Assembly: GCF_963853765.1 (NCBI RefSeq)
Contig: NC_088855.1
Span: forward strand, 52,514,001-52,578,000
Direction of reading: 5' to 3'
Source: Magallana gigas
Taxonomy: Eukaryota
DNA: 64,000 bases
The notes beneath the pieces were generated by a model. It had not been told where the DNA came from. It saw nothing but the letters and a program-made list of their open reading frames with translations, and ran no database searches. Positions 8,692 to 49,581 of the stretch are shown here, piece after piece. Each line of letters starts with the position of its first letter. Position 1 is the stretch's first letter. A program made the position numbers and the translations under genes.

Positions 8692-8962
8692 TTAAATATT
8701 AAAAGATGATAATACAGTATGCTGTCAAAGGGAGATCAATTATTTAGAAAGTGAAAGTAATACTTATGTATGCTGGCGTCTCATTATATTGTGCTACTAA
8801 AATACATGTATTATGCTTACCTATATTGGTCAACATCAAAATGATAATCCAATATCCGCGCTTCGAGTTCATCCTGAACAACGTTTTTATTCGTTGTTTA
8901 ATCACGCCAGGTCAAAAATGTACCAAAAAAGTAAACTTCCGGTTTTACGGCGTCTCATAACT

Positions 8963-13050: not shown

Positions 13051-16000
13051 TCAACCAAACGCAACATGGGAAACGTCATGATCACCTACAATTTATCGCA
13101 CAAATGATGATACTTCATAAAGGTTGGCTAAATTTGAAATAATTGAACAGTGGATTTTTCAACAAACCTGTCAGATGAACCGTAACATGTTTTCCTGATT
13201 GGTCCACTGAGAACGGTTCCTGGTGGATAACATGGCCATCTCGTTTAACATTGAGTACGTAGTCACCAAGGAAACCAGTGGTGCTCAGGTGTGTATGCGG
13301 ACTGATTGTTTGGGAATAATCCGTTTTCCACGACTTTTCAACAAGATCAAGGTAAACCTGTCCTGCTGCATTTGGCTTTAATTAGATCATACCTTGCAAA
13401 TTTTGTAATGAAACAAGCTTAAGCAGTTCATAAAGATAGGGTTGCTCTATTTGTAATATATTTTCTAATAAGATACAAGTATTTACCGTTAGATTTGGTC
13501 CTTCAAATAGCTTGGCTGGTGCATTATGAATTGCGCCATCCCAGAAACCCCAGAGCATGATGCCCTCTACTGCCGGATGACTGAAGAAAAGAGTCATTAG
13601 ATTTTCCAGAGCGACAGCTTTTTTGTTGGCATCATTTTCCGACACAGTCAGCTCCGTTATCCAAATCTTGAGTCCGGCCTCAGCCACCTTGTCTAGCCTG
13701 TACTGCAATATTGTTTCTCAATTAACCTTTCCAAAATGGTTTTATTATCAGTTATAATAGAAAACCATACATGATTAAAGGATATTTACTTTAACTACAT
13801 CGATGTTTATATCGCTGCTATGAAAATGACCTTGAATTCCAACAAAAGAGACCGGAATACTCATATTGAGTAGTTGTAAGGCTTGGTTTCGAGTTGCCTG
13901 TAGAAAAAATCAAAGTTTAGTAATCTATTGAAGATTTGTCTTTTACATTACTGTTATTGATTTCCATCCGTTCAAGATTTTACCGTTGTACACTGCGAGT
14001 TGGTAATGACGTTGTATTCATTAATGAAGAGTTTAACTCCAGGTTCTTGACTATGAATCCACTGGAACATTTTGGCGGTTATGTCGGGGTCACCTGTGTG
14101 CCTCTCAAAATAGTCGCCATGTTGGTTTTCATTATTCACATCCCAATGCTCCAGTCTATAAAATCATCGCGATAAAAAAACACGTTGCATTTGCAAACTG
14201 CATAGTATTAAACCCACAAATGTTGTTAAGAATTTAATACTGAGGACTCATTATGATTCATGGTGGCTCAATTTTCATGGTATTCGTTGATAGACCTTCC
14301 CCACGAATTTGCATCTTCGACGAAAAAATATTTTGTAAGAGTTAGTTTTTTCAATAAACAAAATACCAACAGGTCCACGATATTACATTCCCACGAATAA
14401 GCAAAACACCCACAATCCACGAAAATTGACCCCCACCTCAAATTTAAATGATTTTACAGTTATGGACTTTAGGGAAACACAACTATTTCTATCTATGTAT
14501 CTAATTGTATATATCTATTTATCTAATTTTTATATATCTATCCTTCCTTTCTTTCTTACGTTCCTCTGGTATGGCTGATGACTTGCTGAACATGAAGTTT
14601 CATTTCTGTGATGTATTCGGCTGGAGTCATCCCCTGAAGCCATGCTGGAGAATGTCCATCTACCCCCCAGAACATGTTGTGTCCCCGAATTTTGATTCTA
14701 TTTTAAATCAAAGATTACGTTTATGTTAAGAAATGAAGAACATTAGAATTAAAAGCATATATTCTGTTTAAGTGTCGTCGGAAAGTCTATTATGTAATAC
14801 TTTGTAAGACATCTTACCCATGAGCCTGAAGAACTTTGATAGCATTGACAGGTCTGTCAAAGTTGATATGACCCTGCAATGTAAATATCGATGATTCAAA
14901 AATATTTTGTCAGCCTATACTTTTAGATGTGTCTGATTTACATTGATTTTGTGTTGCCCTGCGCAAACTGTACCAATATTAATTTGTGAAATTTTCATGT
15001 CTCTTAAAATAAACATATGTGTAGTGTTAAGTTATTCTTTTTTCTTAGGTTATAGTATCCCTGATATGTTTTGTTTAACTTTTTTTTAATTCTTATTTAT
15101 TTCTTGCATAATGTGAACAAAAATTTAAAATTGTTTAAGGGTTCTAATTCTATACATAAGTAAAACCTGCAGTTTCTATTTGGGCAGTAGGAAAAAAATT
15201 ATATCGAGTGGCAACCAGTACACAGATTGTTGCTTATCTTCATTTTTTATGTACTTTGAACAATCAGACAGTAGAAATTCAGTATTCTTCAATCATCTTT
15301 TATAACCGATACGGTGGACAGAAAGGATCCAATAACTTTTACCTTTGTCCACTCCATGAGCCGCCATTTTAGGGCGTTGACAATGACAGCCCACTCAAAG
15401 TGTTTGTAAACGAAGTCTTGATAAGCCACCTGGTGTGTGTCTGTCATCATTGAAGCTACAACTCCTGCGCCAAACCCAAAGCTGTGTTTTTGTTGCTTCA
15501 ACTGTAATTAATGTGGGTTTTTTTTTAGGATTAATCGTTTTAAGTGTCTAAATACAATGAGTATCCACTTCAAAGTTCGTTATTTATGAAACAATGTTTA
15601 TTTATTTAAAGTGAGATTTATAGATACAGTATTCGAATAAAAAAACTATTTTCCTCTTACCTCTATACTTATTCCGGTAGCGGAAGCTCCGTTTGCCAGT
15701 CTTCGAATTAACAAATCAGTTTAATGACAATTTAAAATCGAGGAAAATTGAATTTCGTTACAAATTAATTTAAGCCTCACCTGACTGTAATGGGCGCTTT
15801 CCTTAAAGAGTTTATCCGTGCATGAGCCTCCGATTTCCAGTTGCTATTGGTCGATATTTTTTGCAAACTAGAAAAATCTTGAAGATAATTGACTGTTGCG
15901 TTGTGGACCTGGACGTATAAGTATGCACTGGTCGTACCTGTCTCAGAAATAATTTAAATTTCCTACATGTTCAAACATATTCAGATGTTTTAAAAAGTCA

Positions 16001-17230
16001 ATATGAAATTTTGGAAAAGAGTAATGTAATGGATAACAACCATTTCATAACATGAATGTCTTGGTAATATTATAAAGGAGTAAAGAATCGTTAATGAGTA
16101 TGCCTGGAAATTTTCCAATCTTCGCTGTTGAATTTTTTGCATTGAGGTTACGGAAAACATTAAGTTATAGAGACTTCTTTGTTAAAGAAAACATTTATTC
16201 TTCGATATAAAAGATTGTTGGTATTTTGCACACATTTAGTATTAGTAAATCAATAATATTATTGATAATTATAGAATATTTACTTTATTTCGTGAAAGAT
16301 AAAAGCACTTAGTTGGTTAGAAAGGGTTGTCCGTCTGTTTGACTAGGTATTGTCCTGCTTTATGACAATTCGAAACTGTAATATCAATAAAACTTCATAA
16401 GAGTAAAAACGGTTTTGAACAAATGCTTAAGTATTGGAATTTACCATCAGGTGTAAGAAAATCTCCCCCGACCTCAGTCCAACCAAACTTTTCCTGTTGC
16501 ATATGTATTTGACCGACTGTTGCAAATTTCGGGTGACCTGCACAAAAATACAGTGTGGTGCTTTTTAGTATTTTCCTTTTCCTTGAAATTTAATTTCGCA
16601 AACTTAAGTGATACTGCGAAAATATCAATCTTTGTTCACTTCAAACCATTAACAGTAAGATGAGCCATCAATTCCACAGTAATGTATGAGACCCCTGGCG
16701 GCATGTTTAGTAACCGGATGTAGGCCTTAGCAGCGTACCATTGTCCACCCTCCAGAACAACGCTCTGTCTAACTCCTGACCAATCATGGTGTCTTTTTTC
16801 GATCAAGGAAATGAAAAATAACTACATTTGAATGATTGAACAAAGTTAAACCAAATTATGCAATCATTGAACCAAACTGACCTTATCCTTGTTGGAACAC
16901 AACGAGGTAATGATTACTAGTAATCATTGTTATCAATTTTTTTTTAGTGTTGTGAACATATGTTTTTTCTCTGCATTTTATCTTGCACAAGAATGCTGTT
17001 GATTAATAGGGGGAATAAAAATGAAATTATTGATATTACCTGTTGGAAATCATCACACACTGACTCCCGTGATATTTATTCTCGGTATGCACTGTCATTC
17101 TACAGTCGCTGCAATGCCAGTTGCCGCTAAAAGAGGAACTTTCAAAATCTGCATTTTTCAATAATTCTACTTCAGCTTTGCTGGGAAATAAAACTCCAAG
17201 AAACACAGAAAATGTGATGACCAGCCGCAT
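13051..17230 (-). CDS. Secreted GH10 endo-1,4-beta-xylanase-like protein, copy C (572 aa, intact)
   Basis: 13 GT-AG exons: 17230-17040, 16792-16647, 16537-16445, 15937-15781, 15700-15661, 15501-15343, 14873-14818, 14697-14560, 14155-13984, 13897-13790, 13702-13487, 13375-13168, 13085-13051 (1719 nt, open frame). Hydrophobic N-terminus MRLVITFSVFLGVLFPSKA and CBM4/9-like LLKNADFES...W. GH10 motifs NALKW, RGHNMFW, WDVNNE (acid/base), QGH, IWITELTV (nucleophile), LWGFWD. Confidence 0.92.
14240..14459. mobile_element. Small MITE-like insertion in intron 8 of GH10 copy C
   Basis: Ends ta|ctgaggactcatt ... atttaaatgattttacag|t (CTG...CAG termini) with internal ccacgaa motifs. The match is imperfect and only one side shows TA. 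Confidence 0.4.
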
Positions 17231-18206
17231 TTTCGCACGTCCTAGTCTACGATTCAACAAGATAACATTTAACAGTGCCTTATAAACCGTAGTTATGTCA
17301 TGCAAGTCCGATTCCTAGGTCAAAATCTTTGGACATGACGAAAGTAAGACATAGTGACATTTTCTACAGAAACTGTAATCATTGTTATGTAAATGATTGC
17401 TGTTGTTTTCATATCTGTTGTATAATAAAAATGCATGATGCCCCAAAAAAAATTATATGACATATAATCATTCTTTGTAAAATTGCTATGATGTGAAAAC
17501 CGAAACCTGTAGTGAACATCATATAGTTCGATTGTAACAACCGCTTTCTTTTATGCAAAAATCAATTTGTAGCTATCTTTTTTAAGAATCGACAACAACA
17601 GTTTCCATTGAGCAAATTTCATAAACTTTTGCAGATCTGGTTAATTATTTGAACATTATATTAGCTGCAAAGATTAAAAGGTGCATGAAATAGCTTAATT
17701 TATGACGACGTTATAATCATTTCACTTCGTTGAATGTAACTGCAAGTTTTCAGTAGAATCTGAAGATAATATTTCAGTTCCTTTATGCGTTGAATCAATT
17801 ATTCCAATCGTGACTCAAGCTAAAAATAGTGTCCTAGAATATAACTTTAGTTCTTAGTATTGTAGTACTATTGTGTAATAGAGTGCTGGTAGAAAGCTAA
17901 AACGTGTAGAACGTTTACAAAGCGCAATGGGGGGAGCATAAATATATGTAAACTTTTTTAAAAATAACTTAAAGAATTTTTAGTTGAAGGTGTGAACCTT
18001 TTTAGGTTAAAAATGGCAAAGCAAAGTTTCATCTCATTTCTTGCATATTGGTCAACAATCATTCATTTTCCTTTAATAGATAATATCAATATTGTTATAT
18101 GTTAAGTATATATAAATATAAATCTTTTAAAGTCTACAATTAATAATAACATGTATCGGTTACTTATGAGTTTAAGGCCCAAATCTTGGAAGACAACGAT
18201 TTTTTT

Positions 18207-20565
18207 CAAGTTCAAGTTCAAGTTCATTTATTTCACTCATAACATATAATGTTACACGAGGTGCCGAAGAATTATATACAAAAGTATAAGAAAAGCAGGA
18301 TTTACAAAAAGAAACAGAATAAAGTAAACAATGAATTTTTTATAGTTGTTACGTAGGATGACCGACCAAATCAAATATTTTTCTAATTAAACTACACATT
18401 TTCATAAGTATTACATGATTTGAAGATTACATAAGTGTTCTAGATTTTAAGATGTTTGGGTTTTTTAAGATAATAATTACTAAACATTTTTTTTCTTACA
18501 TGTGACAGTGCACTACATTCTAAAACATATTGAAATTCATCGCAAATTTGATTGGCTTCACATAAGCCGCATTTGCGGTCTTCACGTGGAATATTGTTCC
18601 ACCTACCAATTTCTATAGGGAGGTGATGGTTTGTAGTTCTATATTTAACAAACAAGTTTCTTAATTTTCGTGAAAGTATTAATAAATAGTCTTCACAACA
18701 AAAATTACATTTAAAAATACGATATATAGCACCTTTTGACGAACTGTCTAATTCACTATTCCATTTTTGGACAAATTGATCTTTACGATTTTGTTTGACA
18801 ATATTTTCTAACCGTTTTACGCTAACAGGATTTTGCTGGTGCCATACAAAGGATAAGCCACAGCTATCAAGAATGATTTTTATACAAACTAGCCACTTAT
18901 TATTGATTTCACCTCTAATGTAACAATTGTAAAGATACATATACATAGTTTTACATAACTTATTCTCCTGGCATAACATCATCTTTGCCCAAAATCCAAT
19001 CATTCTCGTATAAATTGTTATATATAATGGAAAACGACCTGTCTCCCCATAAACCATAAAACTGGGGGTACTACTTTTCAAGTTAAGTTTGTGTTTAAGA
19101 AACCTTAAATGTACACGCTCGATAACAACAATATTTTCGTAACCCCATATTTCACAAGAGTATAGTAAAACTGGTAAAACAACCTTGTCAAATAAGTCTA
19201 ATTGAATATCAAAGGACATGTCAAAATATCTTATTTTTCTAATAATGCCATACATAGCTTTCTGGGATCGAGTACACAAGTGTTTCCTGGCTTTAAAAAA
19301 AGAGCCAGATCGGGAAAATAATATTCCTAGGTAGTTATACTCTTTAACTAATTCTAATTTATCATTATTGTACATAAATGAGCACTTAGGAGCAGGTCCT
19401 TTGGAGAATATCATAACTTAAGGTTTTTTTCACATTAACTGTAAGTTTCCAGTATCTACAATATATACAAAATTCGTCAAGCGCATGTTGTAAATCTTGA
19501 GCCGATTCTGTTAGTATCACAGTGTCGTCAGCATAAAACAAAATAAAAAGTTTACTGTAAACAAGCAACTCTTCTTCTAAATCATTTGTGATACTACTTA
19601 ACCCATTGACATTTCTCTCGTTCATAAAGTGTTCTATATCGTTGATATACATGGAAAATAGAAAAGGTGATAAATTTTCTCCTTGACGTACACCAAGGTT
19701 ACAAAAGAGTGAAGTTTCATCATTCAATTTTACTTTTGACTTGATACCGTTGTACATGTTTTTTAAGAATGTAAGGCATTTGCCAGTTATACCACTTTTA
19801 TGAATTTTAAACCATAAACCCTCACGCCACACAGTGTCAAATGCTTGCTTAAAATCAATAAAAGCACAAAACAGTTTCTTTTTACCATGCATTAAAGTAT
19901 GTGACAAAAAATGCAATAATATAATGTTTTCAAAAGTAGAATATCCTTTCCTAAATCCAGACTGACAACCACTAATTAAGTTTAAATCATCAGAATACAT
20001 TTCAAGTCGACTGCTTAAAACGCTTGTAAAAAGTTTTCCAAGACAGCTTAACAAAGTGATAGGTCTGTAATTCTCCGGTTGTGTTGGGTCACCTTTATTT
20101 TTTTACACTGGTTTAACTATACCAATTAACCATTCATCAGGTACTATTCCTGTATCGTAAATAATATTAAACAACATCACATATAGAGGTAAAAATATAC
20201 ATGTAACAATAGTTGATACAATATGTTCATTCAATACTTGATCACAACCCGGAGATTTATTGTTTTTTAACTTTTTAACTGCGGAGAGGATTTCTTCCTC
20301 GGTAATAGTACTATCAAGAAACTCACAACTAGTTTCCTCACACTCAAAACATGGTTGCTCCATATTATAACTATCGTTGCGTTCAGTTTCATTCATACTA
20401 CGCAAGAAATGATACATATCATCAATATTGACAGAGCATTTACTAACTTGATCCGATTGATTTAAAATTTTCCAGAAGTCCCTACCATTTTTACTGCGAA
20501 GATTTTTTAATTTCTGTGATAAATTGGCCTTGTAATCTTTAATACATCGGTCTAGAGTTGTCCAA
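18207..20565 (-). mobile_element. 5'-truncated, disrupted non-LTR retrotransposon (RTEX/CR1-L2-like reverse transcriptase)
   Basis: Consecutive ORFs 20103-20594, 19386-20054 and 18440-19414 give ITEEEILSAVKKLKNNKSPG, YRPITLLSCLGKLF, QSGFRKG, FIDFKQAFD, GVRQGENLSP and YADD. In-frame TAA at 20103 and a frameshift near 19415. 3' tail AATAAA-like then (TGAACT)3 at 18207-18233. No endonuclease domain present. Confidence 0.9.
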
Positions 20566-23528
20566 AATAAATAAATCAAGAACGCTGTACTCACAAGTTG
20601 GCCTAATAATTGGTTCGGGGTCGTGATTGGACAAATATAGATCTACTATTTATCAAGATAATTGTATTCAGTTAAAACTTTTCTTTGAAAAAGTTTTCCA
20701 AAAGGTCTTAGAGATAGAAAAAGTTGTAATGTAATTGTTTATAAAAAAAAAAAGATCATACTTTAAACGTATATAAGCATTTTACACTAAATAATCTACA
20801 TTAAAGCTTTTTTAATCCGGCGAAAGTTGGTTCTGAAAATTTTCGCGAGATTAGCAATATCCCGTTTTGGGGACGAATTGTTTCAAATAAAATCATATTT
20901 ACTTTCATATTTACATTTACAGTATACACAACATAAACAGATAAACACTAAAGTATTTTAGTCAAATACAAATATGTATGTTGAAATTACATAAACATTT
21001 GAGCAGTTCTTCAGCACTTGTAATAATGAACAGTTTACGTCTTTACGTTAGAAAATAATCGTAAATGTTTCTTTTGAAAAGGGTTTGTCTGTTTGTTAAA
21101 GTTTGCATTTTATTAACAGAATGCAGTAAATCTTGAACGTCTTCTCTTGCAAAATATGAATTCTTAAAAAAATATTTTACAAAAACGGCACCGATTTTTA
21201 TCATTTTCATTTGTTAAACAACTGCATAACGATATGCAATGGAATTACTTTTTAAACCAAATCATTGTAATTGATCACTCTTTCTTCGCGATTAAACAAT
21301 GACGTCCATGAGAGTAGCGCATGCTTCACCGCGGAATTTAACACCTAGTTATCTACATGTAGAGCTATCTTTCTTTCTTCAGCCAAAAATCACATTAAAA
21401 TTTTTTAAAAGACTTGTTTATGCTCTTTCTACTTATGCATTTAGTTAATCTACTAAATTTCAAGGAGTGGAAATATAATTTCTAAATAATCTAACTTCTT
21501 TCAAACAAAACATTTTATTATTTTTAAAAAATTCTTCGAGAAGCATTTAACTAATTACCCTTTGTAATGGTGGATCGTTTACTATTATTCTAACGGTACT
21601 TATGACCTGTTGTTGCCCTAAGTCATGACGTCAGGCATATTTTAGGTTTGTAAGTTGCATTTTTCGAAACAGTGCAAGCAATGGGAGCTACCAATGTCAA
21701 TATTTTTCATAAATAGAAAATACGATGTATTTTTAGTGTGTTTAAATTTGTAACTAACGAAAATGCTATTTGGGATGTAATAAGCATTGGTGAGCAAGAG
21801 TTTTTAAGAAAAAAGGAGAGATAATTTAAAGCATCAGAGATCTTTCTGTTGAAAGGTAGAGCAGTACTATAATGTATACGTATCAATAGAATGGAGGGGT
21901 CCAAAAATGGGTCACTTGTTTAAAAAACTCTCCTATACTGTTGAAGAGCTACACAAGAGTTGACACTACTCTGGAACAGTGTACATGCAGCTTTATTATA
22001 ATAAAATAAATTCCGATTACTCTTGCAGTATGAGAAACCTTTGCTTGGAAATGACAGAAAGGCATCTGTTCTTCTTTTCCGCTTTCATGCTTACAATAAT
22101 TTGATACTTTCCTTAAATAATCAGGATTATTTGTTTTTATATCAAATAGTCTATTTTAATGAGACACTCTGTATATTCGGAAAAAATTCGATTTACCATT
22201 GGCTTATCAGGAAGCCCCTGCAAAAACCCCATAGTTTCATTGAATCTTAGCAACCACCCACACATCACCCATTTTTTTATACTACTTCAAACTCAAATAT
22301 CTATATCTGTTTTTAACATATATTGGTGCCTTTGGTTTCTTTCTCGTTTTTCTTTTCTTATATTTTGACAGGTCATCGAGTAACAAATCGAGAGCAAACT
22401 GGAAATTCGCTAGAAGACCAGAAAAATAGCCAGACAGGATGACAAGCAGCTCGGTGTCATCTGGACTTATGTTCAACAGTTTATCTTTGTTCAAGAGATT
22501 TTAAACCTTTTACTTGTACATGTTCCTTTTCTTGTCGTATCACATTTTTAGGGTGATGGGGACTGGAGAGTCCGCAGTGGTATGTGTTGACACTTTCTGC
22601 TCCAAAACCCGGGTGTCTTCCCCACTTGCTTTTAAAGCTAGGGCTAGTATATAAGATAAATCATTCAATATGGTTTATAAAAGGCAAAGTTATGACACAG
22701 TTAACTATGCCATGTTGTTACAATGTAAAATTGGGTTTTTTTGTATAGTGGGGCCTACATTGGGTATAGCTGGGGCCACATCAGTGAGGGGATACTACAG
22801 GCTGGTGCATGTAATAATTGGTTGATAAAGTAGCCTTTGTCATGCAAAGTTCTAAACCATGTTGCACTTCAGGAGACAGGGTGAGAAGAGCAGGTCTCAC
22901 TGCCCTCCTTAGAACGCTGGAGGTCGTTCAGGTTCGGGCACTGATGCTTCATACTCGGCCAACAATATGTCCCTACATGGGTAGGTAAACTGGCGCACTG
23001 GTCGGCTCCTAGTTACCCCCACAAAAATCATTATGCGGCCAACATCCACCAATTGTTTGTAATAGCGGAGTAATAAATATTTTTCATACTTTTAATTGTT
23101 AGGTTCTATTTTATAATTCCTGAATTTTGCCAGGCTCTATCTTTCAAGCAAATATAACGTATAGTGCTGGATTAGCTTGGTGAATTCAATAATAAATGAA
23201 ATAAATTGAATGGAAATAATATATATGCCATAAAATTAGAGGAAAAAATACTTCAACTTTTGAATCTGCGTGTTCCGTTTATGAATTTATGAACAGCAGT
23301 TTAAATCATAATTTATTTCTTAAAAAAAAAAGATTGAAACATACCCTCCATGAAATATTCCTTAGTCAGACAAGCTTTCTGGAAAGCTATCATTCGTAAT
23401 GGTGAATCGTTTACCTTTATTTTTATCTGTACTTGCGGTCAATATTTTAACGCAATGAAATAAATTGGCGTATACTTTATCTACTGTCTTATGCAATCCA
23501 AACAAATATCAATACATATTCCTACATA

Positions 23529-26500
23529 TCAGCCGAACACAATATGAGATACGTGATGGTGGTCACCTTGAAATAAACAAAAAAAATAGTCAATTGTTTA
23601 GATATAACCAAAAACGGTATTGTTTGAAATCAAATTATATATTTTACTTTGATGCTAACCTGTTAGATGCACTGTGAGGTCTTTCCCTGTGGAGTCTACT
23701 GTAAAATTTTCCTGGTGAATGACGTGTCCATTTTGACGGACGTGCATGACGTAATCTCCTTTGAACATTGTTACATTTACCGGGTGGTCTTGGTCTAACC
23801 TACGCTTGATGTGAGAACGCCATGATCCGTGGACCAGATCTAAATATTTTTGACCAGCTGCATTTGGCTACAAAGATAAACATAAGATATACAAAGTTTT
23901 CAACTACACAATTTCGAATTTTCGACTGCATAAGAGCTACCGTAATTCCCGGGCCGTTAAACAAAGCCTCGTTTTGATGCCAGTTGGATCCGTCCCAGAA
24001 GTGCCATAGAATGACCCCTTCTACCGCGGGGTGACTGAAGAACATGGTAAGCAGGTTTTCCAGAGCCGCCGCCTTCTTGTGTTCATCTGCCGCGTCCACC
24101 GTCAGTTCTGTGGCCCAGATCTTCAAGCCCGCCTCCGCCACCTTGTCTAGCCTGTACTGTGACGACACAAAAGTGCATAATCAGAGTAAAATGGCTCTAA
24201 ATATAAAATGTCAGAACAGGAGCCAATTTTTTTAAATGAAACTTGGACTGGTTAAAATAGTAAAAATAAAGTCATAAATGAACCCCTAAGATTAACATCA
24301 TTTTTTAAATTGTATTTTGATGTTTTATTTGCACATATATACATTTGAAACTTTTTTACTTTTAATTTTGATCCAAATGCCATAAATTCCGAAATGTTAC
24401 ATCAAAATGTCAACCTTTTCCTGCATTTTTGGAATGTGCATAAAACTGCTTATCTTACATATATGCAAGTTATTTTTTATTTCAATTTCAGGCTTGAACA
24501 AACAAAATATTTTTTTGAAGATTTATTCATCTAAGACTTATAATTAAAAGACAAAACTTGTTTATTTAAAGCTGTGCGCTTTATTTCTCATTCGTGAAAT
24601 AAAATAAAAATGCACATTTTTGGCTGATTTTGATTTTATTCTAAAACCTGATGACATAAACTGTCAGTAGGTGAAATTAAATAAGATGGATAGATGAAAA
24701 GGATATCTTATACCAACTCTTCTTCAAAATACTAAACAATTTGAATCTGAAATATTTTAAAAATGGTGAATCATTGCGGCTAATTTTGACTCTTATCCTT
24801 ATAGTCCTTTAGTGGAAGAAATAATCAATCAAAAGGTAATTTTTATCAGAGTCTTTGATGTTCCAGCATTATTCTTTTATATGTAAAATTAAGTTTAAGA
24901 GTTATTCAATGCACGGTTAACAGATTATCAAAATCGATGTACGCATTTTGTCGTGGGTTAACTGATGTCGTTTTGTATTTACAACTGGACAGAGTGGTTA
25001 CCTTTAAAACATCGATGTCAATATCTGTGGTGTAGAAATGGCTTTGTAGACCAATGTTCCCTATCGGCACCTGGCTTTTTATGAAATTCTGTGCCTGATT
25101 TTTTATCGCCTGAAAAAAATAAAAGATTTTAATATGGATTTGCCTGCAGTATCTTCGCCAGTTTACTTTAGACAAGCATGAAGTGTTTGTTCTGACCGTG
25201 GTCATGGTGGACACCGGAAGGACTGAGTAGTCATTGAGGAAGAGCTTAATGCTGGGATCAATGGAGTGAATCCACTGGAACATCTTGTGGGTAATGTCCG
25301 GGTCCGTCGTATGACGCTCAAAGAAATCCCCGTGTAGATTCTCGTTGTTCACGTCCCAGTGGAGGAGTCTGTAAAATCAGAAAGAGACATTCTTTTGAAT
25401 CTCAAAACAAAAGTGTAGGGCATTGCTTTTTCTGACTGTTAGATTTGTAAGTACTTCCTGGTGAAGGTTTGGGGTCCGCTCTGACATTACTGGCATTACA
25501 TGTACCCGTCGTGATTGATAGCATTTTTGCAATTCATGATACATGGAATTACCTACTTCATTATAGAATTACACGACAGCTTACTCACTTGCCCTGTGTA
25601 TGAGACATGATATCTCGGACATGTGCCTGCATTTCGTGGACGATGTTTGATGAAGACATCGCTGGTATCCAAGAGGGCACAAACTTGTCCTTACCCCAAA
25701 ACATATTGTGTCCCCGCATGTTTATTCTGTTGAAAATGGTATGGATATTTTTTCTGTATATACATCTTTACAGCAATACATTTGAAGCAAAACAAGTGAA
25801 ATGAAGCATACCCATGTGATTCAAGAAGTTGAATAGCGTTCAAAGCTAGTGTGTAATTGGTGTGTCCCTAAAGGTAACCATAAGAATACTTTTTAGGAGA
25901 TAACTCGGTAGATGGATAAAGAATGTTTGTGAAAAACGATTTCTACGTTCTTTTACGCAAATCTGACAGCAAGTATTTTGCTTACCCTTATATGTTCCAC
26001 TCCTTTCCATTTTAGTTTATTTGCAATAACGGCCCATTCAAAATTCTTGAGGACAAAATCAGTGTATGCTTGATAAGAAGGGTTTCCCAAGTGGTCTGCA
26101 TGCACGGCTGTTCCAAACGGAAACGAACTTTTTTGTTGCATAAACTGTTTGCAAAAAAAATTATAAACACTTTTTTACAGATAGATCAAGTGCAAAATCA
26201 GTATCAAATTGAATACATGTTTACTGGGATTTTTTTTTCCTTTGATGAACATTAATTTGTCGTCATTCGAATCAATGATGAAATCCACAAAAACTAGTGT
26301 TAAACGAAGATTGATGAAACAGTAAATCAGCGATGGTAAATACAAGTTAAATTCTATATTTAATTTTCAGATGCTTCTGTCATATTGTTTATATGCACTG
26401 AATAATTCCAACTTTTTCTATAAACAATCACTGGGTTTAATTATTCATCTCATTACAAAAATAACTACCTGTTTATTAAACTCTATAATGCAAACTTCAG

Positions 26501-28018
26501 GATTTTGAAGTTTTATTTATCTAACTTTTCATTTTAACTTTTTTATATTTACCTCAACATACACCCCATGCGCGGATTGGCCAGGCGCCAATCTACAATA
26601 CATCATAATGATGACGTGATACTACAGTTTATATCAATTGTCAATTTTCTGCAACAGCGAATATATAACACTTTGAAGATCAGTTTACGAAAATATCAAC
26701 GCCCCCTTTTTATACATTAATTTGATTTTTTTTAACCGACTTGACAGTGACGGGTGCTTTCCGGAGAGTTTGTATGCGGTGGTGTGCTTTAGAGGACCAG
26801 TGAGGGTCATGTGGTAAAATTTGGAGGCTCGCCGAGTCCATGAGGAAATCAATGTCTACATCCACAATCTCAAGAAAAACTGTTGCCGAAGTTGTTCCTA
26901 CAACAATTATAGTCTATGACCTACCTTTTTAATGATAGTACAGTTTGTAGAATTAATGATAATCAACTTGTAATTGCCATTTCATTCTTAAACTTTGCTT
27001 CACTCATTTAGCAAATAAACAATCACTTTTTCAATCTCTTTCCCGCAACGATGTGAAATATACATAGAATGACCAAGAATAGATTGACTCCTTTCGATTT
27101 ATTTTTTTTCTCTCATTAATATTTTAACCATATAAACGTTATTATATAAAAAATTAATCGTACAGTATTATCATACACATATAATTCTACAAGGACGATA
27201 ATTGTTAAAATAAAGTTCATTAAGTTCGTTATTTACCATTCGGAGCATGAAAATCGCCACTTATTTCTGTCCAACCAAATTTCAACTGCTGCATAGGCTG
27301 TTCGGCAACTTTCTGATAGACCGTTTTACCTGAAATTGCAAAAGTAATATTTTCACGTTAACCCTTCGTTAAAATGTAGAAATAAGATATGATATATTCA
27401 CATAAGAGTATCATTCATTGCTTATTTACCGTTTGTTTGTAAGTTGACTCGAAGAAAAACAGTAGTATACATTGTTCCGGGGTGAATGTTAAGGAGTTTG
27501 AAATATGCTTTTACGATGTAGTTCTGTCCTGGCGAAATAGAAACCTTTTGGTGGGGACTCGAAATACTGTGTGATCTAAATTTGAATGATATAATGAGTC
27601 AAGCCGGCTAATTAAAAAAAAAACATTGTGTATGCATATAAGATACAAATCTTGTTATCCGATATGTTGATTCTCGATTAAATTATAACAAAAAGGCAAG
27701 CCAGGTTTAATTTAAACTTTTTAAAAAATCCGAGCGCTAGTTTTTGTGATGATCAGATTTTGTATCGTGAATACATTTCATTTGGTGATTAAAAATAAGT
27801 TGAATAGTTTTGAGTGCACTTTACCTGTGAGTGACTTTGACTGAGCGAGTCCCCTGGTAAACATCGGCGGTGTAGCTAGTAATGCTGCAGTCCTTGCAAA
27901 ACCAGTTTCCATGGAAAGAAGAACTTTCAAAATCACCGTTTTGTAGCAATTCATTCTGAGCACTGGTTACACTAATCAGAAGTATGCTCACTATAACTGA
28001 CGGTACAGGTAGCTTCAT
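23529..28018 (-). CDS. Secreted GH10 xylanase-like protein, copy B (574 aa, intact)
   Basis: 13 exons: 28018-27825, 27575-27430, 27329-27237, 26897-26741, 26592-26553, 26144-25986, 25867-25812, 25726-25589, 25368-25197, 25109-25002, 24156-23941, 23867-23660, 23566-23529 (1725 nt, open). Exons 2-12 have the same lengths as in copy C. Motifs NKLKW, RGHNMFW, WDVNNE, QSH, IWATELTV, LWHFWD. Confidence 0.92.
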
Positions 28019-41642: not shown

Positions 41643-42424
41643 GTTAACACTTAAAAAATTAATGACATAATGCAATATTAATGTTGAATCATATTTTTCC
41701 CGTATATATTGTGTCCGAATTTTCTTAAAGAGACAGTACGGCACATCTTTACAAAAAACCGACTTGAAAAAATTTTCCGATCGGGTTCTGTATTTTTGTG
41801 CTACTCATAAATGTATAAACTTTCAGAAAATTACAAAGTTCTCCATTAAATAAATCTAATTATTTCATTAAAATTAATAATTACGTATAACCTATCACAT
41901 AAATACAATTGCAACGTGTTATGGGGTCAGCCTTCTATACTATTAAGCATGCGTATTTACTGTAAACAAAACACATGCATGGCTAGCAAAGATTCTCCTG
42001 GACATGTTTGTTGATAAAAATATGTCTTTTCTACTTCTCACAGGTAATTGTTGTTCAAATATTTTAAAATAACCACAATTATTATTTTGTAAGCATGTAT
42101 TTTGCGTGCTTATCATAGGAGTTGATTGAAATACCAAAGCTGTAAGCAGGTACTCTGATGCAGGCGTTTTGTAGTTTATTTGCAAAATGCCTTAATTTAT
42201 AAGTATAAAGATTTATTCATCAAACCTTTCTTCATCTTCATCACTTTGATTTTGTATTTACTTCAACACATACCCTATGCGCTAAATGTGCATGTGCCTA
42301 TCCACATTATAGTGACAAAGTGATATTTTTTGTCCAGTTCTTTTATCTTATTTTACTAAAATATCAATGTCTTGCTGTATTTTTGTTACAAAAATGCTTA
42401 TAAAAGGGGCTTTGTTTTTAAACC

Positions 42425-43230
42425 GACTTACATTGACATGTACCTTCCTAAAAGTTGGAATTCCTTGGTGTGCTTCGCAGGACCAGACGGGGGTGTCATA
42501 TGGGTAAATTCTATACGGAAAACCGTAGCCGATGTTGTTCAAACAACAAGCATTGGCTAGGACCAATTTTTCTGATATAATAGTTTGTGGAACTCATGAT
42601 AAACGACATGTACTTACCACCAAATTTAAACTTACAGGGTTTACTTCACTCATTTAGCGAAGTAACAATAACGGTATGAAACTCTTCTCTGTCCCGATCT
42701 AAAATATATATACATATAATGACCAAGAGTAGCAAGACCCTGAACATTAATGTATAAAAAATAAATTCATTATTAACAATTGGTGGATGATAATCTCCAC
42801 TTATTTCTGTCCAACCAAATATCGGCTGCTGCATCAGTTGCTCAGCAAGTTTCTGATGGACTGTTTTACCCTGTTTTGTGGCCATTTTTTATTTTAACCT
42901 GTTGGTAAAAATGTAGAAATAAGATTTAAAATATTTAAATAATAGTCCCATTCAGTTTTTGTGGTGATTAGATTTTGTATTGTGAATACATTTCATTTGG
43001 TGATTAAAAATAAGTTGAATAGTTTTGAGTGCACTTTACCTGTGAGTGACTTTGACTGAGCGAGTCCCCTGGTAAACATCGGCGGTGTAGCTAGTAATGC
43101 TGCAGTCCTTGCAAAACCAGTTTCCATGGAAAGAAGAACTTTCAAAATCACCGTTTTGTAGCAATTCATTCTGAGCACTGGTTACACTTATCACAAATAC
43201 GCTCTTTATACCTGACTGTACCTGTAGCTC
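42425..43230 (-). pseudogene. GH10 gene fragment, paralog of copy B
   Basis: Exon 1 homolog 43233-43040 with the start codon lost (ATG AAG CTA > AAA GAG CTA). Exon 2 is absent. Exon 3 homolog reads GKTVHQKLAEQLMQQPIFGWTEISGDYH (~42790-42870), and a degenerate exon 4 end reads PVWSCEAHQGIPTFRKVHVNV with the same gtcggtt donor as copy B. The upstream region also resembles that of copy B (43290-43385 vs 28070-28165). Confidence 0.85.
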
Positions 43231-44138
43231 TTTGTTTTATTTTCAAGGAATACACGATATAATAACAATGTGTCGTACATGAGAGATACAATCAATATAG
43301 ATAAGGCAACACCATAAATACATTATAGACCAATGTGAAACTTGTCCTTCACATCTCATGTTATGTTTCGGAAATACCGAGTGAAACTAAACTGTTATAT
43401 CAGGATGATTCAACGAATTTTTTTAATCGGTGTTGTTGATGTTGTATTATTTTAATAATAAGATATTTACTTGAATTTTTTTTACTTCTTTTACTATAAC
43501 AAGAATTAAAGTTCAAAAATATTAAAATGATGTTTGATCTAAAACCCAACATATTTAAGGGCTTTAATACGTAAAGCTATAGGGAATATACGCCAGATGT
43601 CAGTTTCGTAAGATTTGTTTGACCTCTAACACTAGCATTTGATGTTGATAGTTCCTTCCTCGGTTTGTAGCTATAAAGGGGTTTCTGTAATAAATACAAA
43701 AATTGCTGATATTTCTAATCAAACTTCGCTTTAAAACCATCAGAATGGTTATTTACCGGTACATCTGTAGTTGAAATTAAATTGCCACAAATATTTGTTT
43801 ATGAGTGAAGAGGATTTATCTACTCGAACCTCAAAACAAAAACATTCTTATTTGTAAAGATGTGATACACTGTAGATAATCTTCCTTTGTTTTATATGAT
43901 AAATGCATAAACTGTAGATCAAGTATCTCCACTGAATGTTAAAGAAACATAGCTCAATGTATGCTGAGAGCTATTCTCTAATGAACTCTAGTATTTGCAC
44001 CTCATCTCTTATAACAGGAGAAGAACAGAAAATGAATCATTTAATAAATCATTTGGAAAATAATTCATTCCATATAATTATATCTTTCAATTTATTAAAT
44101 ATTCCACACATTCAATTGAAGTTGAATGCTGTTTCCTT

Positions 44139-47100
44139 TTAACCAAATGAAATATGGGATACATCTTGATGATCGTCTGAAAATGAAATTGTGAAAAATG
44201 CACCAACAAGCAAAATGAACAAAGAATAACTTTTACAATATATAACATAACTGTATAATTTTACATGAAGAGCTTTAACTCTTACTGGTAAGATTAATGA
44301 TGATATCCTTCGCTGTACTATCCAAACTAAAGTGTTCCTGGTGTATAAGATGGCCGTTTTTCTTAATGTTTAGAAGATAGTCTCCCTTAAAGGCGTGTGT
44401 TTGTATGGTGTTGCCGGGTTGAATGTTGTGAGTGAAGTATGTTTTCCACGTTTTATGAAAGAGATCGAGATATTTCTGTCCAGCAGCATTTGCCTAATAC
44501 AACATAAAATTTCGATGTAATACGTCAACAACATACTTTTTTATCATTCTTTAGAACTACATGTAATGCATTGTATTTCGTTGTTCTTAAACCAAATACA
44601 ATTTCGTTGGGATTTAATTTCGTCATATCATATCCTTGGGTTAAAACTTCGTCATATATTAAATTTCGTTGAAAAATACTGCCAACAAAATGAAAAAATG
44701 ACAATAACAAACCGTCAACCATCTCAAAAATCCATAAAACGAAATACAAATTCAAAGCAGAGCAGCACGGATCTCCATAGAGATAGAGGTATGATCAGGT
44801 GCCTAGAAGGAGATAGCATCTCTGCTACCGAAATGAAATCCTCAACGAATATTTCTGCTTCTACAGTATGACTCAACTGTAATATTTGTTCCAGTAAATA
44901 GAGCGTTATCTTTGTGCCAAATCTTTTGATCCCAGAATCCCCACAACAGGATGCCCTCTACTGCAGCATGACTGAACAACAGGGTCATGACCTTCTCGAG
45001 GTTTGCCGCTTTCCTGTTATTGTCTGTGTCACTAAGAGTTAGCTCTGTAATCCACAATTTTAATCCGGACTCGGCAACTTTATCCAGGCGGTACTGAAAA
45101 TGGAACAAAAATATGTTCCTTACATGAGTTTTCGAATATTTGGTCAATTTATCGATGATTTGTTTGAAATTGTTCCTATTGTGCAGTTAAATCTTCAACC
45201 TGAGGTGTAATTTATCAAAAAATCTATAAGTGCGTTCTTGAGGGCGTCAGTGTCTAATGTGAAATTTACGAAAGTTCAGCCTTTAAATTTAATGAAGGTC
45301 TGTTACCTTAAGGACATCCATGTCAATATTGTGTGAGGAGAAATGTCCCTGAAGCCCAAGTCCATAAACTGGTACCCCGTCTTTTTTAAAACGCGCAGCT
45401 TGGACTTTCAGAGCCTTGAAAGAACATCTCGAGTTTGGCGTATAATTAAGATTAACTAAGATCAGTGAATCAAATTCAGAAGATTTATGATATATTATTA
45501 AGTAAAAAAATAAAATAAAACATATCCCATACAATATAGCTTGGCGCTTTCATAAAATGCTGTCTTTTTGGCAATTCATTTAATTTATGTAAATTTGAGG
45601 TAAAGGATCAAAAGTGCACTAATACTGGCAAGTTATTCTCTAAGAATCTATTTAATAATAGTCTGTTAAAATAACCAACATGCAATGTATAGTGCATTTG
45701 TTTTGTGGAATGGTGGTTAACAATAAATGAATGAATAATTGCATAATTTTTTTCAGTAAACAAATCAGATTTTGATGGAAAAGGAGACGGTAATTTTAAA
45801 ATAGTCAGTTTACCCCTCTACGATCAAAATACGTTGAAACTTTCTTGTGGTTGAAATTTGAAAAAAATATGAGGAAGGTTTGACACTTATGAGTTAACAA
45901 TTACCCCATTTAAACTACAATACGAACGTGAATTAAATTATTAATAAGATATTTAACGAGTTGCAATGAGCGTGCCATTGGTAAAGTTTGAGCAAACCGT
46001 GGTTTCCGCTGAGCTGGTGATGACTTGGTAGTCGTTCAGGAACAACTTGACGCCTGGCTCCTGGTTGTGGATCCACTGAAACATCTTCTCCGTGATGTCC
46101 GGGTCCGCGGTGTGGCGCTCATACCAATCCCCGTGAAGATTCTCGTTGTTAACGTCCCAGTGCTCTAATCTTGTCATGCAAATTAACTACGACTATAGCT
46201 TTCTACTTCTTTATACACTTGTCCTGCAAATTAACTCCGAATTTAGCTTACTATTTCTTGATACACTTGTCGTGCAGATTAATTCCGAATAAAACTCAAT
46301 ATTTCTTTATACACTTGTTATGCAAGTTCACTCCGATTAAAGATTACTATTTCTATATACACTGGTGTTTTGACAGAATAAACGCCTCCATTAAAAATGT
46401 CATGGTTGTATTGCTAATTGATAAATTTCTGTAAAAAGTAATTATAAATTGGGACAATGATATATATGTGGTGGTCAACACTTACTTTCCAGTGGTCCTT
46501 GAGATGACCTCATGTACGTGATTTTTCATGGATGCTAATAATTCAGAGCTTGATTTTGCTTTCAGCCACTGAGGAACAAACTGGTCAACGCCCCAGAACA
46601 TATTGTGTCCGCGAACTTTGATTCTTTAAAACAAAAAAGGGTGAGTCCTAAGGTTTGTATGAGTTGGAGACGCTTGTTGAGTTTGTCAGCGTTTCTTGTA
46701 ATCATTTGTATTCTAACTTACCCATGAGATTGCAATGCAGCTATAGCATTCATTGGCCGATCATAGTTGATAATGTTCTAAAGAAGAAAACAAAATCACT
46801 TTCAAAGTTCATCACCTGGTTTTCTTTTCTTCAGTCATAGGTGTTGTAATTTTGCGGAACCGCGAGGAATGAATATCTGCTTAAAATTGCAAGAAGCACA
46901 TCTCCGCGGATTTTTTAAATTTCGTTTTTATTTTTCGAACGGATAAAAACTAGATGAAACTATGAAAAAAAAATTCGTCATATTATAGCAATTTAATGCA
47001 AAACGTTTGAACAGTATCAAGACCAATGAACATACATAAACAAACCTCTGTCCATTCCATTTGTCTCCATTTCAGTGCGTTTTCCAACACAGCCCATTCA

Positions 47101-49581
47101 AAGTTATTGTAGACAAAGTCTTGGTAGGTCCTCTGTGATTGATCCGTCATATAAGAAGCCGATACAGCTGTCCCAAATGCGAAAGCCCGCTTCTTTTGAA
47201 CAAGCTACATTCAACACAAAACAAACATAAAACTGAGAGTAATCAAGCCACACCGTTTCTTTCCTTTTGCTAATGTAATTTACATTGTTAAACAAAGCTG
47301 ATTTTGGATCCAGGTCTGCATTTTACAAAGGAACTAACTACAAGGTCGTAAATATTTATAATCTTGTAGACTGATTTTAATGAACAAAATTTATATAAAA
47401 CCATTTGTTTACAACTATTTCAATTCCCATAATTATTTTTTTTACAGTTAAAGAATGAAACATTGATTAGTTTGTGATTGATTAGAATTCATTAATCAGT
47501 AAAATGCGGTCCAGAGGTTTATAATTGACATTTTATTACATGTAACAATGGAAGGATTACATTGGAGTCTAACCTCAATGGATATTCCGTGTACGTTTAC
47601 TCCTTGAGGAAGTCTGGGTTCAATGTAAAGATCACAAGAATAGAGTATAAATCATAACTTTTTTTTTCAAAATTCCGAGCATCTTACTTCTTTTAAGCTC
47701 ATGTAACAATATTTCAATTCAAACTTTGAATTATATTACAAGTACGATAGTAAAAAAGTCAAAGATATTTAAGATAATAAGCAACAGTATAAACAAATTA
47801 ATAAAGGTGAACTTAAAACAGTTATTCCATGATGTGTTTGACCCACTTGAATGAGACGGGGGCCTTCCGGAGAGTGTTGATTCTGTGGGTGGCATCTGAG
47901 AGCCAGTGTGAATTGTGTGGGAGTTCCACAGCACTGGCAGCGTCCAACAGGAAGTTGACCTCCGTGTCTTGTATCTGTATATACACCGCGGCAGTGGTAG
48001 CTCCTTCAAATAATTTACACAACCAGTTGTAAATTATTTGAACATCCTTCTCTTTTTAGTTAAAAACCTTATTAGAATATCTTCTCGGTCATTTTTTTTT
48101 TATTGGAGGAAGTTAATCTTACCATTTTGGGCATGAAAATTGCCACTTATCTCGGTCCATCCATACTTCAACTGTTGCAATGGTATGTTGGCCAAAACAG
48201 TGTAATGAGGATGCCCTGTTGTAAAATACATACAGTGGAGGTATAGTATACTCACGTTAAAATATTAATGGACATTATCGCGCAACCGAAAAAAAATATG
48301 CCTAATTCTTCATCCATTTGAATTTGCTATACTATAGACCAATTCACACATCTTTGAAGAAAAACCAATAGATTTTTCACAGAAGCCTTTGTAGTATAGA
48401 GGTTTGTTACTTTCTCATTTGAAGTTAAAAGTCTGTTTTCCTTGTGTATTTTGATTTCCACAGGATGGAACAACCCACAGATCGAAGGAATAAATTTAAT
48501 TCAGAGAGATTTCATCACCGGAAACCCAAGTATTTTGTTGCATAAAGAAGGGGAAAGTTGATTTTTCTCTTCTGACCTTTTTGTTGACCCCGCAAAGGGA
48601 AGCAACTTTAGTATAGTATGGATTGGACTATACACACATTGACCAAATGTAAAGAAAGTTGAGCGTTTTATTGACAAAAATTGATAATGGTTATAAAAGT
48701 GAATACCGTTTACAGTGAGAGCCAGCATCATAGAAACCTTTGCGTAGGCATGTCCGGTAGGAAGGTTTAGGAGCTTGAACTGCATGCTGACCACGTAGTT
48801 CTTCCCGGGAGTAACAGCAAAGGTTTGGCGGGGAGACGACCAAGGGTGATGTCTGCACAAAGACAGGTGTATCAGAATGAATTGATTAGGTTTCAATATT
48901 ATACAATAGTTTGTGTATTGTCTTTCTTCTGTCTTTATTAAATTGTGTTTGTTGTGCTGGAAAGTTGGTTCTATGTTGCATTCTTTGAGATTGTCTGTAA
49001 ATTTGTACGTTTGTCTGTTTGTACCTCTACAGTGAATGTATATGAGGAGTAAAGGAATTTTTGTAATATAGTATAAAAAATACAACTTATTTAATTATTT
49101 AATGCAACATATTAAACTAAACTTTTTCTTTTTTTTTTAACTGTAATTATGGTTATTTTGACAGGTCTAAAGAATAATGATTTAATAATTCAAGTGATGG
49201 TTTACAACAACAAAAATAAATAAAAAACTAAGTACATATATAAATATTATAATACTTAAAACTTTAAACGTTATCTTAATGTCAGATTTAAAATAAGATT
49301 TGAACATGTACACGATTAGTTACATTTTTCAATGGTACATAATATTGTAAGTGAAAGAAGGTACAACAGACATACAGAAAGAGTTCTCACCTGTTAGAAA
49401 CCATAAGGCTACGACCTCCATGGTAAGTGTCGTCTGTCCGTGACGTCAGTTTGCAGTCAATGGGAACCCAGTTACTGGAAAAAGAGGTGCTCTCAAAATC
49501 AGCATTTTGGAACAACTCGGTTGCAGCATTGGTCTTTTCAGCCAAAATGGGAAACAAAACTATGCTGAAGAGGCACCACAT
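44139..49581 (-). CDS. Secreted GH10 xylanase-like protein, copy A (573 aa, intact)
   Basis: 13 exons: 49581-49391, 48852-48707, 48215-48123, 48003-47847, 47613-47574, 47204-47046, 46777-46722, 46623-46486, 46169-45998, 45414-45307, 45093-44878, 44493-44286, 44176-44139 (1722 nt, open). Motifs ENALKW, RGHNMFW, WDVNNE, QGH, LWITELTL, LWGFWD. Confidence 0.92.
46170..46362 (-). repeat. ~48-bp tandem repeat (4 units) ending at the exon 9 splice acceptor of GH10 copy A
   Basis: Unit (+) acttgtcatgcaaattaactccgaatttagcttactatttctttatac. Only one unit is present at the same position in the pseudogene (36042-36090). Confidence 0.85.

Follow-up and report, generated by a model that had tools for sequence, protein, structure and literature searches.

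A conserved tandem array of CBM22-GH10 genes in the oyster Magallana gigas, probably encoding secreted endo-β-1,4-glycanases

Glycoside hydrolase family 10 (GH10) enzymes encoded in a tandem array by the Pacific oyster Magallana (Crassostrea) gigas, on contig NC_088855.1, are the subject of this analysis, which covers positions 52,514,001 to 52,578,000 of that contig (64,000 nucleotides, hereafter the window, with coordinates counted from its first base). A closely related description is the survey of Wang et al. (2020, PMC7560691), which reports that GH10 is expanded in herbivorous molluscs, often together with carbohydrate-binding modules (CBMs), and counts three GH10 genes in C. gigas, family and species both matching the present array. 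GH10 genes are there called "mostly dispersed in the genome"; the present locus, by contrast, holds its three genes and two relics in one 36-kb array that is conserved in Ostrea, and no discussion of intron conservation across phyla was noticed in that paper. The three genes are themselves the RefSeq loci named in Table 1, and both they and the molluscan GH10 expansion (Wang et al. 2020) are already known. What may be new, with modest weight, is the conserved tandem organization with its two relics, the divergence of the paralogue lineages at the -2 subsite, and the support that introns lend to an origin in bilaterians, for which no paper stating it was found in the literature searched. With high confidence, the locus is read as a host-encoded tandem array of secreted CBM22-GH10 retaining endo-β-1,4-glycanases, probably xylan-preferring, that would digest algal or detrital cell walls.

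Among molluscan systems, the "EGX/MFC" of Ampullaria crossean is an endogenous GH10 enzyme like the oyster genes, and relatives from Pomacea and Rapana have the length and domains of the oyster proteins and share 11 of their 12 introns. The gastropod clade shares only about 33–35% identity with the oyster proteins and is separate from the bivalves in the tree, and the activities of the snail enzymes are not simply transferable to the oyster proteins. Bacillus sp. KW1 XynA (7D88/7D89, PMC6408826) aligns with 32–33% identity over approximately 365–378 Foldseek columns, the positions of the catalytic glutamates being identical. It is a bacterial, intronless, thermostable enzyme whose chain lacks an N-terminal CBM22, whereas the oyster proteins add a predicted signal peptide and a CBM22. 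The CBM22-then-GH10 order of the oyster proteins is shared by C. thermocellum Xyn10B and Paenibacillus Xyn10C (2w5f, 1dyo, 4xuo), whose CBM22 modules match the oyster N-terminal module by sequence, and the model of the whole oyster protein D matches 2w5f. Compared with the oyster model, however, 2w5f/2wys show 16–17% identity and another domain orientation (root-mean-square deviation ~24 Å over the whole chain), and no C-terminal match of these structures to the model was seen.

The window is AT-rich eukaryotic DNA with a GC content of about 33% throughout, and contains a run of 179 N at 60857–61035. All-against-all comparison of its stop-to-stop open reading frames (ORFs) reveals four co-linear sets of short ORFs on the minus strand at a spacing of about 10 kb, namely A (~13.1–17.3 kb), B (23.6–28.1 kb), C (33.6–39.4 kb) and D (44.2–49.7 kb), together with a partial set, F (42.4–43.2 kb). 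In Pfam searches of single exons Glyco_hydro_10 scores above the cut-off and the first exon returns a weak CBM_4_9 match, and tblastn with the A, B and D proteins finds no further GH10 pieces in the window outside these five copies. The array comprises three intact 13-exon genes (A, B and D), a full-length pseudogene (C) and a 5' relic (F), with the intact paralogues following one another in the order D, B, A in the direction of transcription (Table 1). An earlier note on this DNA had listed three intact paralogues of ~573 residues and two dead copies. Both counts hold, the intact products having 572 (A), 574 or 581 (B) and 573 (D) residues, and the state of the other two copies being evident from the exon-wise lesions of C and the remnant structure of F. 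The outer limits given in that note, 13051 and 49581, coincide exactly with the last base of the A stop codon and with the A of the D start codon ATG.

The splice models were built by hand, by anchoring conserved blocks and seeking splice sites common to all copies. All introns of A, B and D (12 per gene, 36 of 36) are of the GT-AG type, and the intron phases 2,1,1,2,0,0,2,2,0,0,0,1 are the same in the three genes. The eleven internal exons have the same lengths in A, B and D (146, 93, 157, 40, 159, 56, 138, 172, 108, 216 and 208 nt), exon lengths differing only in the first and last exons, by 3 nt. The 12 common intron positions and identical internal exon lengths noted previously are thus reproduced by the spliced models. 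For gene B, the ATG at 28018 yields 574 residues, and the in-frame ATG at 28039, which lies 21 nt upstream and is the RefSeq choice, yields 581.

Table 1. Coordinates of the GH10 genes, their catalytic codons and the two dead copies in the window
Feature	Position	Strand	Details
Gene A	13051..17230	-	13 exons, 572 aa; LOC105338397 'endo-1,4-beta-xylanase 1'
Gene A exons 1-7	17230-17040, 16792-16647, 16537-16445, 15937-15781, 15700-15661, 15501-15343, 14873-14818	-	
Gene A exons 8-13	14697-14560, 14155-13984, 13897-13790, 13702-13487, 13375-13168, 13085-13051	-	
Gene A acid/base Glu336 codon	14128..14130	-	WDVNNE motif; aligns to the Glu mutated in 7d89
Gene A nucleophile Glu437 codon	13652..13654	-	WITEL motif
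Gene B	23529..28018 (28039)	-	13 exons; LOC105338396 'endo-1,4-beta-xylanase 1-like'
Gene B exons 1-7	28018(28039)-27825, 27575-27430, 27329-27237, 26897-26741, 26592-26553, 26144-25986, 25867-25812	-	
Gene B exons 8-13	25726-25589, 25368-25197, 25109-25002, 24156-23941, 23867-23660, 23566-23529	-	
Gene B acid/base Glu337 codon	25341..25343	-	
Gene B nucleophile Glu438 codon	24106..24108	-	
Gene D	44139..49581	-	13 exons, 573 aa; LOC105327293 'endo-1,4-beta-xylanase 2-like' / 'anti-sigma-I factor RsgI6'
Gene D exons 1-7	49581-49391, 48852-48707, 48215-48123, 48003-47847, 47613-47574, 47204-47046, 46777-46722	-	
Gene D exons 8-13	46623-46486, 46169-45998, 45414-45307, 45093-44878, 44493-44286, 44176-44139	-	
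Gene D acid/base Glu336 codon	46142..46144	-	Opposite Ala in 7d89
Gene D nucleophile Glu437 codon	45043..45045	-	ITEL motif; opposite Ala in 7d89
Pseudogene C, D-like	33561..39325 (approx.)	-	13/13 exon remnants; exon-by-exon alignment to D
Relic F, 5' remnant of a B-like copy	42417..43229 (approx.)	-	blastn of the B gene against the C-D spacer; ORF matches

Transcription and splicing of D are documented by RNA reads and contigs. Three contig runs (X1, X2 and X5) and one raw-read polyA run (X21) were aligned on 43900–49800; RNA runs were found that contain 34–46% of the sampled words of the D stretch, 32% of which is exonic. All 12 introns of D appear as exact joints, reading CT..AC on the plus strand, that is, GT..AG on the strand of the gene. 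These joints skip 109, 384, 213, 583, 316, 98, 268, 369, 233, 119, 491 and 538 bases, the lengths of the 12 modelled introns. Eleven of the 12 occur in all three contig runs, the joint across the 109-base intron 12 is present in X2 and X5 only, and three joints are also found in the raw polyA reads. The polyA first mates over the D exons fall on the plus strand only, as would be expected for a stranded library of minus-strand RNA, and read depth reaches 100–500 in the exon bins against 0–20 in most intron bins. One RNA contig ends at 49598 and then runs into adapter, giving D a 5' untranslated region of at least 17 nt. The earlier note had proposed mapping digestive gland and crystalline style RNA-seq to the predicted junctions; in the RNA used here, every intron of D is spliced out at its modelled coordinates. 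An alternative donor of exon 10 (GAT/GTTGTA, 9 nt upstream) is ruled out by the RNA joint 45093/45307, which favours AAG/GTAA. Within intron 11 of D, the segment 44688–44884 shows an RNA depth 20–30 times that of the exons (~6800–7200 in two runs) on both strands, with many loose ends and variant bases, and looks less like a portion of the gene than like a family of short repeats that is abundant and transcribed.

Public records extend this picture to the other two genes. Protein A is 100% identical over 572 residues to P0304, a transcript-derived protein that occurs on 13 contigs, the longest of 1.9 kb; its identity to RefSeq XP_011441801 is 99.3–99.5% (99.3% to XP_011441801.1). Protein B is 100% identical to residues 8–581 of XP_011441799.3 (P0285) and matches P0295, which derives from a transcript contig of 1962 nt, at 99.8% identity, and D is 100% identical to XP_011425963.3. 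The A and B contigs, 1.8–2.0 kb in length, are too short to contain the introns, so the transcripts from which they derive are spliced. RefSeq names the three products variously "uncharacterized", "endo-1,4-beta-xylanase 1/2-like" and "anti-sigma-I factor RsgI6"; the last name is misleading, as it goes back only to similarity with a clostridial protein in its GH10 module. In older models, D is joined to an upstream TRIM-like gene (K1RVX3, 934 aa).

Profile searches place the A, B-like and D proteins firmly in GH10. The queries comprised single exons, an intron read-through ORF of B (25002–25367) and the identical public proteins P0151, P0155, P0285, P0304 and P0313; the profile of the representative search retained 29 intron-coded columns, so that its top matches include ORF-style fragments of genomic contigs. 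Scores for Pfam GH10 (PF00331) are 139.7–162.6 bits (E 1e-40 to 1e-47; gathering cut-off 22.1), and those for CBM_4_9 (PF02018) are 49.5–58.2 bits (E 1e-13 to 1e-15; gathering cut-off 25.9). In the full-length proteins, Pfam places CBM_4_9 at approximately residues 22–155 and GH10 at 213–491 (22–155 and 216–476 in A). The N-terminal module, previously described as CBM4/9-like, is indeed of this type and can be assigned more sharply to CBM22, since phmmer with residues 18–180 retrieves the CBM22 structures 4xuo/4xup (E 2.5e-5) and 1dyo/1h6x (E 2e-3). Aromatic and charged residues of the module (W38, R64, Y83 and W132) are conserved over 75 homologues. For the catalytic part, the nearest solved structure is 7d88 (E 6e-64, D residues 174–553), the alignment taking in two pre-barrel strands, the barrel and a C-terminal β domain of approximately 80 residues; the two strands and the β domain jointly correspond to the XynA accessory domain.

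The AlphaFold2 model of D, computed with 75 homologues, has a predicted local distance difference test score (pLDDT) of 95 and a predicted template-modelling (TM) score (pTM) of 0.92. It consists of an N-terminal helix (residues 2–17), a β-sandwich (39–170), the barrel and the C-terminal β domain. Foldseek yields target-normalised TM-scores of 0.93 to 7d88 and of 0.8–0.86 to classical GH10 xylanases; approximately 50 GH10 structures are matched at target-normalised values of 0.8–0.93, which identifies the (β/α)8 TIM-barrel fold. The N-termini of A, B and D are hydrophobic and signal-like, in keeping with the signal peptide predicted earlier, and since the relatives all start likewise, the proteins are probably secreted.

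The catalytic residues are conserved in all three intact paralogues. The alanines of the double mutant 7d89 (E182A/E280A) fall exactly at Glu336 and Glu437 of D, and the two catalytic glutamates announced by the earlier note are confirmed in A, B and D, within the WDVNNE and (I/A)TEL motifs that correspond to the mutated sites. Each catalytic glutamate is retained in 74 of the 75 animal homologues, and N335 (the Asn preceding the acid/base), Q406 and H408 (of the GxQxH motif) and W471 (the WGFW Trp) are invariant over all 75. Together with the profile match and the barrel fold, the catalytic pair assigns A, B and D to GH10. At the Glu position of the ENxxKW motif (E250 in D), D and its lineage have Glu, whereas Val is found throughout the A lineage and Ala throughout the B lineage. 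By residue offsets, this position presumably corresponds to Glu43 of Cex, a ligand of the -2 subsite; in Cex numbering the -1 and -2 subsites comprise E43, N44, K47, H80, W84, Q203, H205 and W273/281. The N, K, H, W, Q, H and W of these subsites are all present in A, B and D, and the ENxxKW change may serve as a lead to divergent specificity.

Pairwise identity among A, B and D is 52–55%, the CBM being the most diverged region (44–50%) and the barrel the least (57–63%). A quick-method tree covering 41 proteins from bivalves, gastropods, chitons and annelids places all oyster sequences in one clade with at least five lineages; at a support of 99–100 in each case, A and B group with two different O. 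edulis proteins and D groups with one from C. virginica. Because each paralogue pairs with its own orthologue in another oyster species, the duplications are older than the Ostrea/Crassostrea split. The O. edulis chromosome carries the B orthologue with a CBM-GH10 gene 10 kb upstream and a 574-residue A orthologue 10 kb downstream, all on one strand, an order that equals the D/C, B, A order of M. gigas, and the exon lengths of the B orthologue are those of B, exon 1 excepted. The array was made by tandem duplication in the oyster lineage before the two genera separated. Between B and its O. edulis orthologue, the nonsynonymous divergence (dN) is 0.16 and the synonymous divergence (dS) is 2.6, a saturated value, giving a dN/dS of 0.06 that indicates strong purifying selection on B; dS is likewise saturated between A, B and D, and dN/dS is hence given for none of these pairs. 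The earlier description of a diversified system is well founded, considering the 52–55% identity, the orthologues in another oyster genus and the differing -2 subsite Glu.

Intron positions connect the oyster genes to those of distant animals. Loci of Pomacea (gastropod), Capitella (annelid), Lingula (brachiopod) and Branchiostoma (cephalochordate) were compared by mapping their proteins exactly onto the DNA. Exon lengths of 56, 138 and 172 nt recur in oyster, Capitella and Branchiostoma, with 56, 141 and 172 in Pomacea and 56, 138 and 178 in Lingula; an exon of 216 nt in oyster, Capitella and Branchiostoma measures 219 in Pomacea and 225 in Lingula. Nine introns occupy the same column in the same phase in all eight aligned sequences, two more agree within one to four alignment columns, one is absent from Capitella only, and in this sample intron 12 alone is oyster-specific. 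In total, 9–11 of the 12 oyster intron positions are common to four other genera from four phyla. The Branchiostoma belcheri gene (L002, KV411655.1, 1001–10053) contains two CBM_4_9 modules, and the additional N-terminal one repeats the intron phases 2,1,1, which points to an internal exon duplication. A second CBM-GH10 gene follows within 1 kb, indicating a tandem array in amphioxus as well. Lingula anatina (L004) and several gastropod proteins of ~790–890 residues represent a longer animal GH10 subfamily whose added C-terminal domains match Pfam PCSK9_C1/C3, with five more introns in Lingula.

The phylogenetic check suggested by the earlier note was carried out for animals and bacteria, with a FastTree analysis (a fast method) of 24 named animal and 80 bacterial sequences; the searches found no GH10 sequences of plants or other eukaryotes, and the tree does not identify a donor. 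The named animal sequences, all 24 of them, group together in a single clade (support 96) apart from the bacteria, amphioxus being sister to the lophotrochozoans (99) and the branching within the clade following the species tree; P0084 and P0128, both of unknown source, fall among the bacteria. The shared introns and the single animal clade argue that the gene arose once, before protostomes and deuterostomes separated, and has since been passed on vertically and lost in some lineages. CBM22-GH10 is therefore likely to be, rather than a molluscan peculiarity or a late acquisition from bacteria, an ancestral bilaterian gene that was inherited vertically for more than 500 million years and lost repeatedly (for example in vertebrates and most ecdysozoans), with the -2 subsite divergence of the oyster copies pointing to split specificities. 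The opposite view, which sees the genes as contaminants or as recently acquired from a microbe by horizontal transfer, could appeal to the mainly microbial and plant distribution of GH10 and to the full-length bacterial relatives (CBM22, GH10 and C-terminal domain) that a scan of bacterial genomes detects at 28–35% identity in Planctomycetota, Verrucomicrobiota, Bacillota and others. It is refuted by the 12 spliceosomal introns of each gene, those of D being confirmed in RNA, by a GC content of 33% like that of the remaining window, by the retroelement, pseudogene and oyster repeats lying between the copies, by the O. edulis synteny and the introns common to amphioxus, brachiopod and annelid, and by the single animal clade that branches as the species tree does; its probability is practically nil. 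The statement of the earlier note that the genes are host-encoded and not contamination is accordingly upheld by the spliced D introns, the identity to public M. gigas records, the synteny with O. edulis and the cross-phylum introns.

With an origin in the host established, the remaining alternatives concern function. In the proposed mechanism, each enzyme of ~573 residues would combine a signal peptide, a CBM22-type β-sandwich, the GH10 (β/α)8 barrel and the C-terminal β domain, and would act as a retaining endo-β-1,4-glycanase by double displacement, with the WDVNNE Glu as general acid/base and the (I/A)TEL Glu as nucleophile. Xylan is probably the favoured substrate, and β-glucans may be attacked as a side activity; the CBM22 would tether the enzyme to xylan or related β-glycans, and the products released from algal and detrital cell walls in the digestive gland would feed the oyster. 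That the enzymes digest algal or detrital xylan is a reasonable inference from their family, from active sites that are intact, from the expression of molluscan GH10 in the hepatopancreas (PMC7560691) and from the activities that PMC6408826 cites for snail GH10; literature searches on bivalve GH10 biochemistry and crystalline-style xylanase gave nothing oyster-specific. Several points weigh against this interpretation. The RNA runs come from oyster metatranscriptomes whose tissue is not stated, splicing of A and B is deduced from contigs of transcript length that encode exactly matching proteins, and the signal peptides were recognised by visual inspection and by the helix at the N-terminus of the model. 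Moreover, the ENxxKW Glu is replaced in A (Val) and B (Ala), which may act on a substrate other than classical β-1,4-xylan, and PMC7560691 also places C. gigas GH10 expression in the male gonad, an ill fit to a purely digestive role.

It is conceivable, although rather unlikely, that the enzymes are real and secreted but act mainly on something other than β-1,4-xylan, such as cellulose or carboxymethylcellulose (CMC), mixed-linkage glucan or red-algal β-1,3/1,4-xylan, with specificities possibly divided among the three paralogues. The replacement of the -2 subsite Glu (E250 in D) by Val in the A lineage and Ala in the B lineage would fit such a shift, as would the action of Bacillus sp. KW1 XynA (7D88) on xylan and a range of cellulosic substrates (PMC6408826), the activity on pNPC, CMC and pNPG for which the Ampullaria crossean GH10 domain is cited in PMC6408826, and the name "cellulase" given to one related Rapana venosa protein. 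The remaining -1 and -2 subsite residues typical of GH10 xylanases are nevertheless all conserved, the CBM matches xylan-binding CBM22 modules, and most characterised GH10 enzymes are xylanases (PMC6408826). A non-digestive role, in the gonad, in the remodelling of host or microbial glycans or in defence against algae or biofilms, is improbable. Table 1 of PMC7560691 does name the male gonad beside the hepatopancreas among the places where C. gigas expresses GH10 strongly, and the unstated tissue of the D RNA leaves room for it; yet according to the same paper the hepatopancreas is the main site of molluscan GH10 expression, the hepatopancreas GH families begin expression at feeding larval stages, and family size tracks herbivory, being smaller in a cephalopod and a deep-sea symbiotic mussel. 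A loss of catalysis in at least one of the three, leaving a binding protein of the lectin type, was considered and rejected as very improbable: A and B lack the ENxxKW Glu, and single members in other species (P0178, P0207) have lost one catalytic Glu, but A, B and D keep both catalytic glutamates as well as the Asn, Gln, His and Trp that are invariant in the active site, and purifying selection on B is strong.

Under the preferred reading of secreted, probably xylan-preferring glycanases, the splice-level RNA evidence describes a filter-feeding bivalve that makes its own xylanase-type enzymes rather than relying on microbes, and three deeply diverged paralogues are kept by oysters in one conserved array. 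They form a candidate enzyme set for the breakdown of algal hemicellulose, of relevance to aquaculture nutrition and carbon cycling. That amphioxus, brachiopods and annelids share the gene and nearly all of its introns also bears on whether animal enzymes for plant cell walls are ancestral or horizontally acquired, the GH10 evidence favouring ancient vertical inheritance.

The two dead copies record further turnover in the array. The exon remnants of C are 89.8% identical to the exons of D, and C and D constitute the younger pair within the array. Five independent, disabling lesions are present in C: a 1-nt deletion after 39154 in exon 1, a GT>GA change in the exon 5 donor at 37239–37238, an exon 8 that has lost its 5' end and carries an in-frame stop near 36389, reduction of exon 9 to 36041–35954, its last 84 nt being swapped for unrelated sequence from 35953 downward, and a TGG>TAG change at 34070–34068 in exon 11. 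Relic F shows that a B-like copy formerly lay between C and D. It retains exon 1 and the beginning of intron 1 at 43229–42924 with 92% identity to B, lacks exon 2, preserves the exon 3 region at 42954–42762 with 76% identity to B, and continues with intron 3 and the beginning of exon 4 at 42732–42519, beyond which a weak protein-level match extends to 42417; the catalytic domain is absent. The uneven divergence between exon 1/intron 1 (92%) and exon 3 (76%) suggests gene conversion between B and F. In reading-frame comparisons, exon 1 of F (43229–42924) and exon 1 of B (28014–27710) share identical stretches of approximately 45–185 bases. Neither C nor F was found among the public M. gigas proteins returned by the searches.

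Other elements lie between and around the genes. The A-B spacer contains three successive long ORFs of 324, 222 and 163 residues at 18440–20594 on the minus strand, the middle one being a reverse transcriptase (Pfam RVT_1, E 2e-31), which marks the spacer segment as a retroelement remnant. A large inverted duplicate pairs 5012–12367, downstream of A, with 33404–29378, between B and C, at 84–92% identity in five co-linear blocks; the left copy has an additional 3.6 kb (8210–11829), and no long ORFs were seen. This duplicate could represent a large transposon, or else a segmental inversion connected with how the cluster evolved. At 62831–63709 a tandem repeat array is found, with copies offset by ~35–70 bases and 76–88% identity between offset copies, and its artificial long ORFs have no Pfam match. 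Upstream of D, a separate gene occupies 50951–55205 on the minus strand. The N-terminal 266 residues of the fused models XP_052715180 (C. angulata) and K1RVX3 (C. gigas) map to 55205–55053 and 51559–50951, and a paralogous exon with 42% identity is located at 52578–52270. In O. edulis, the gene upstream of the cluster has a weak B-box match fused to GH10, and the neighbourhood may thus be conserved.

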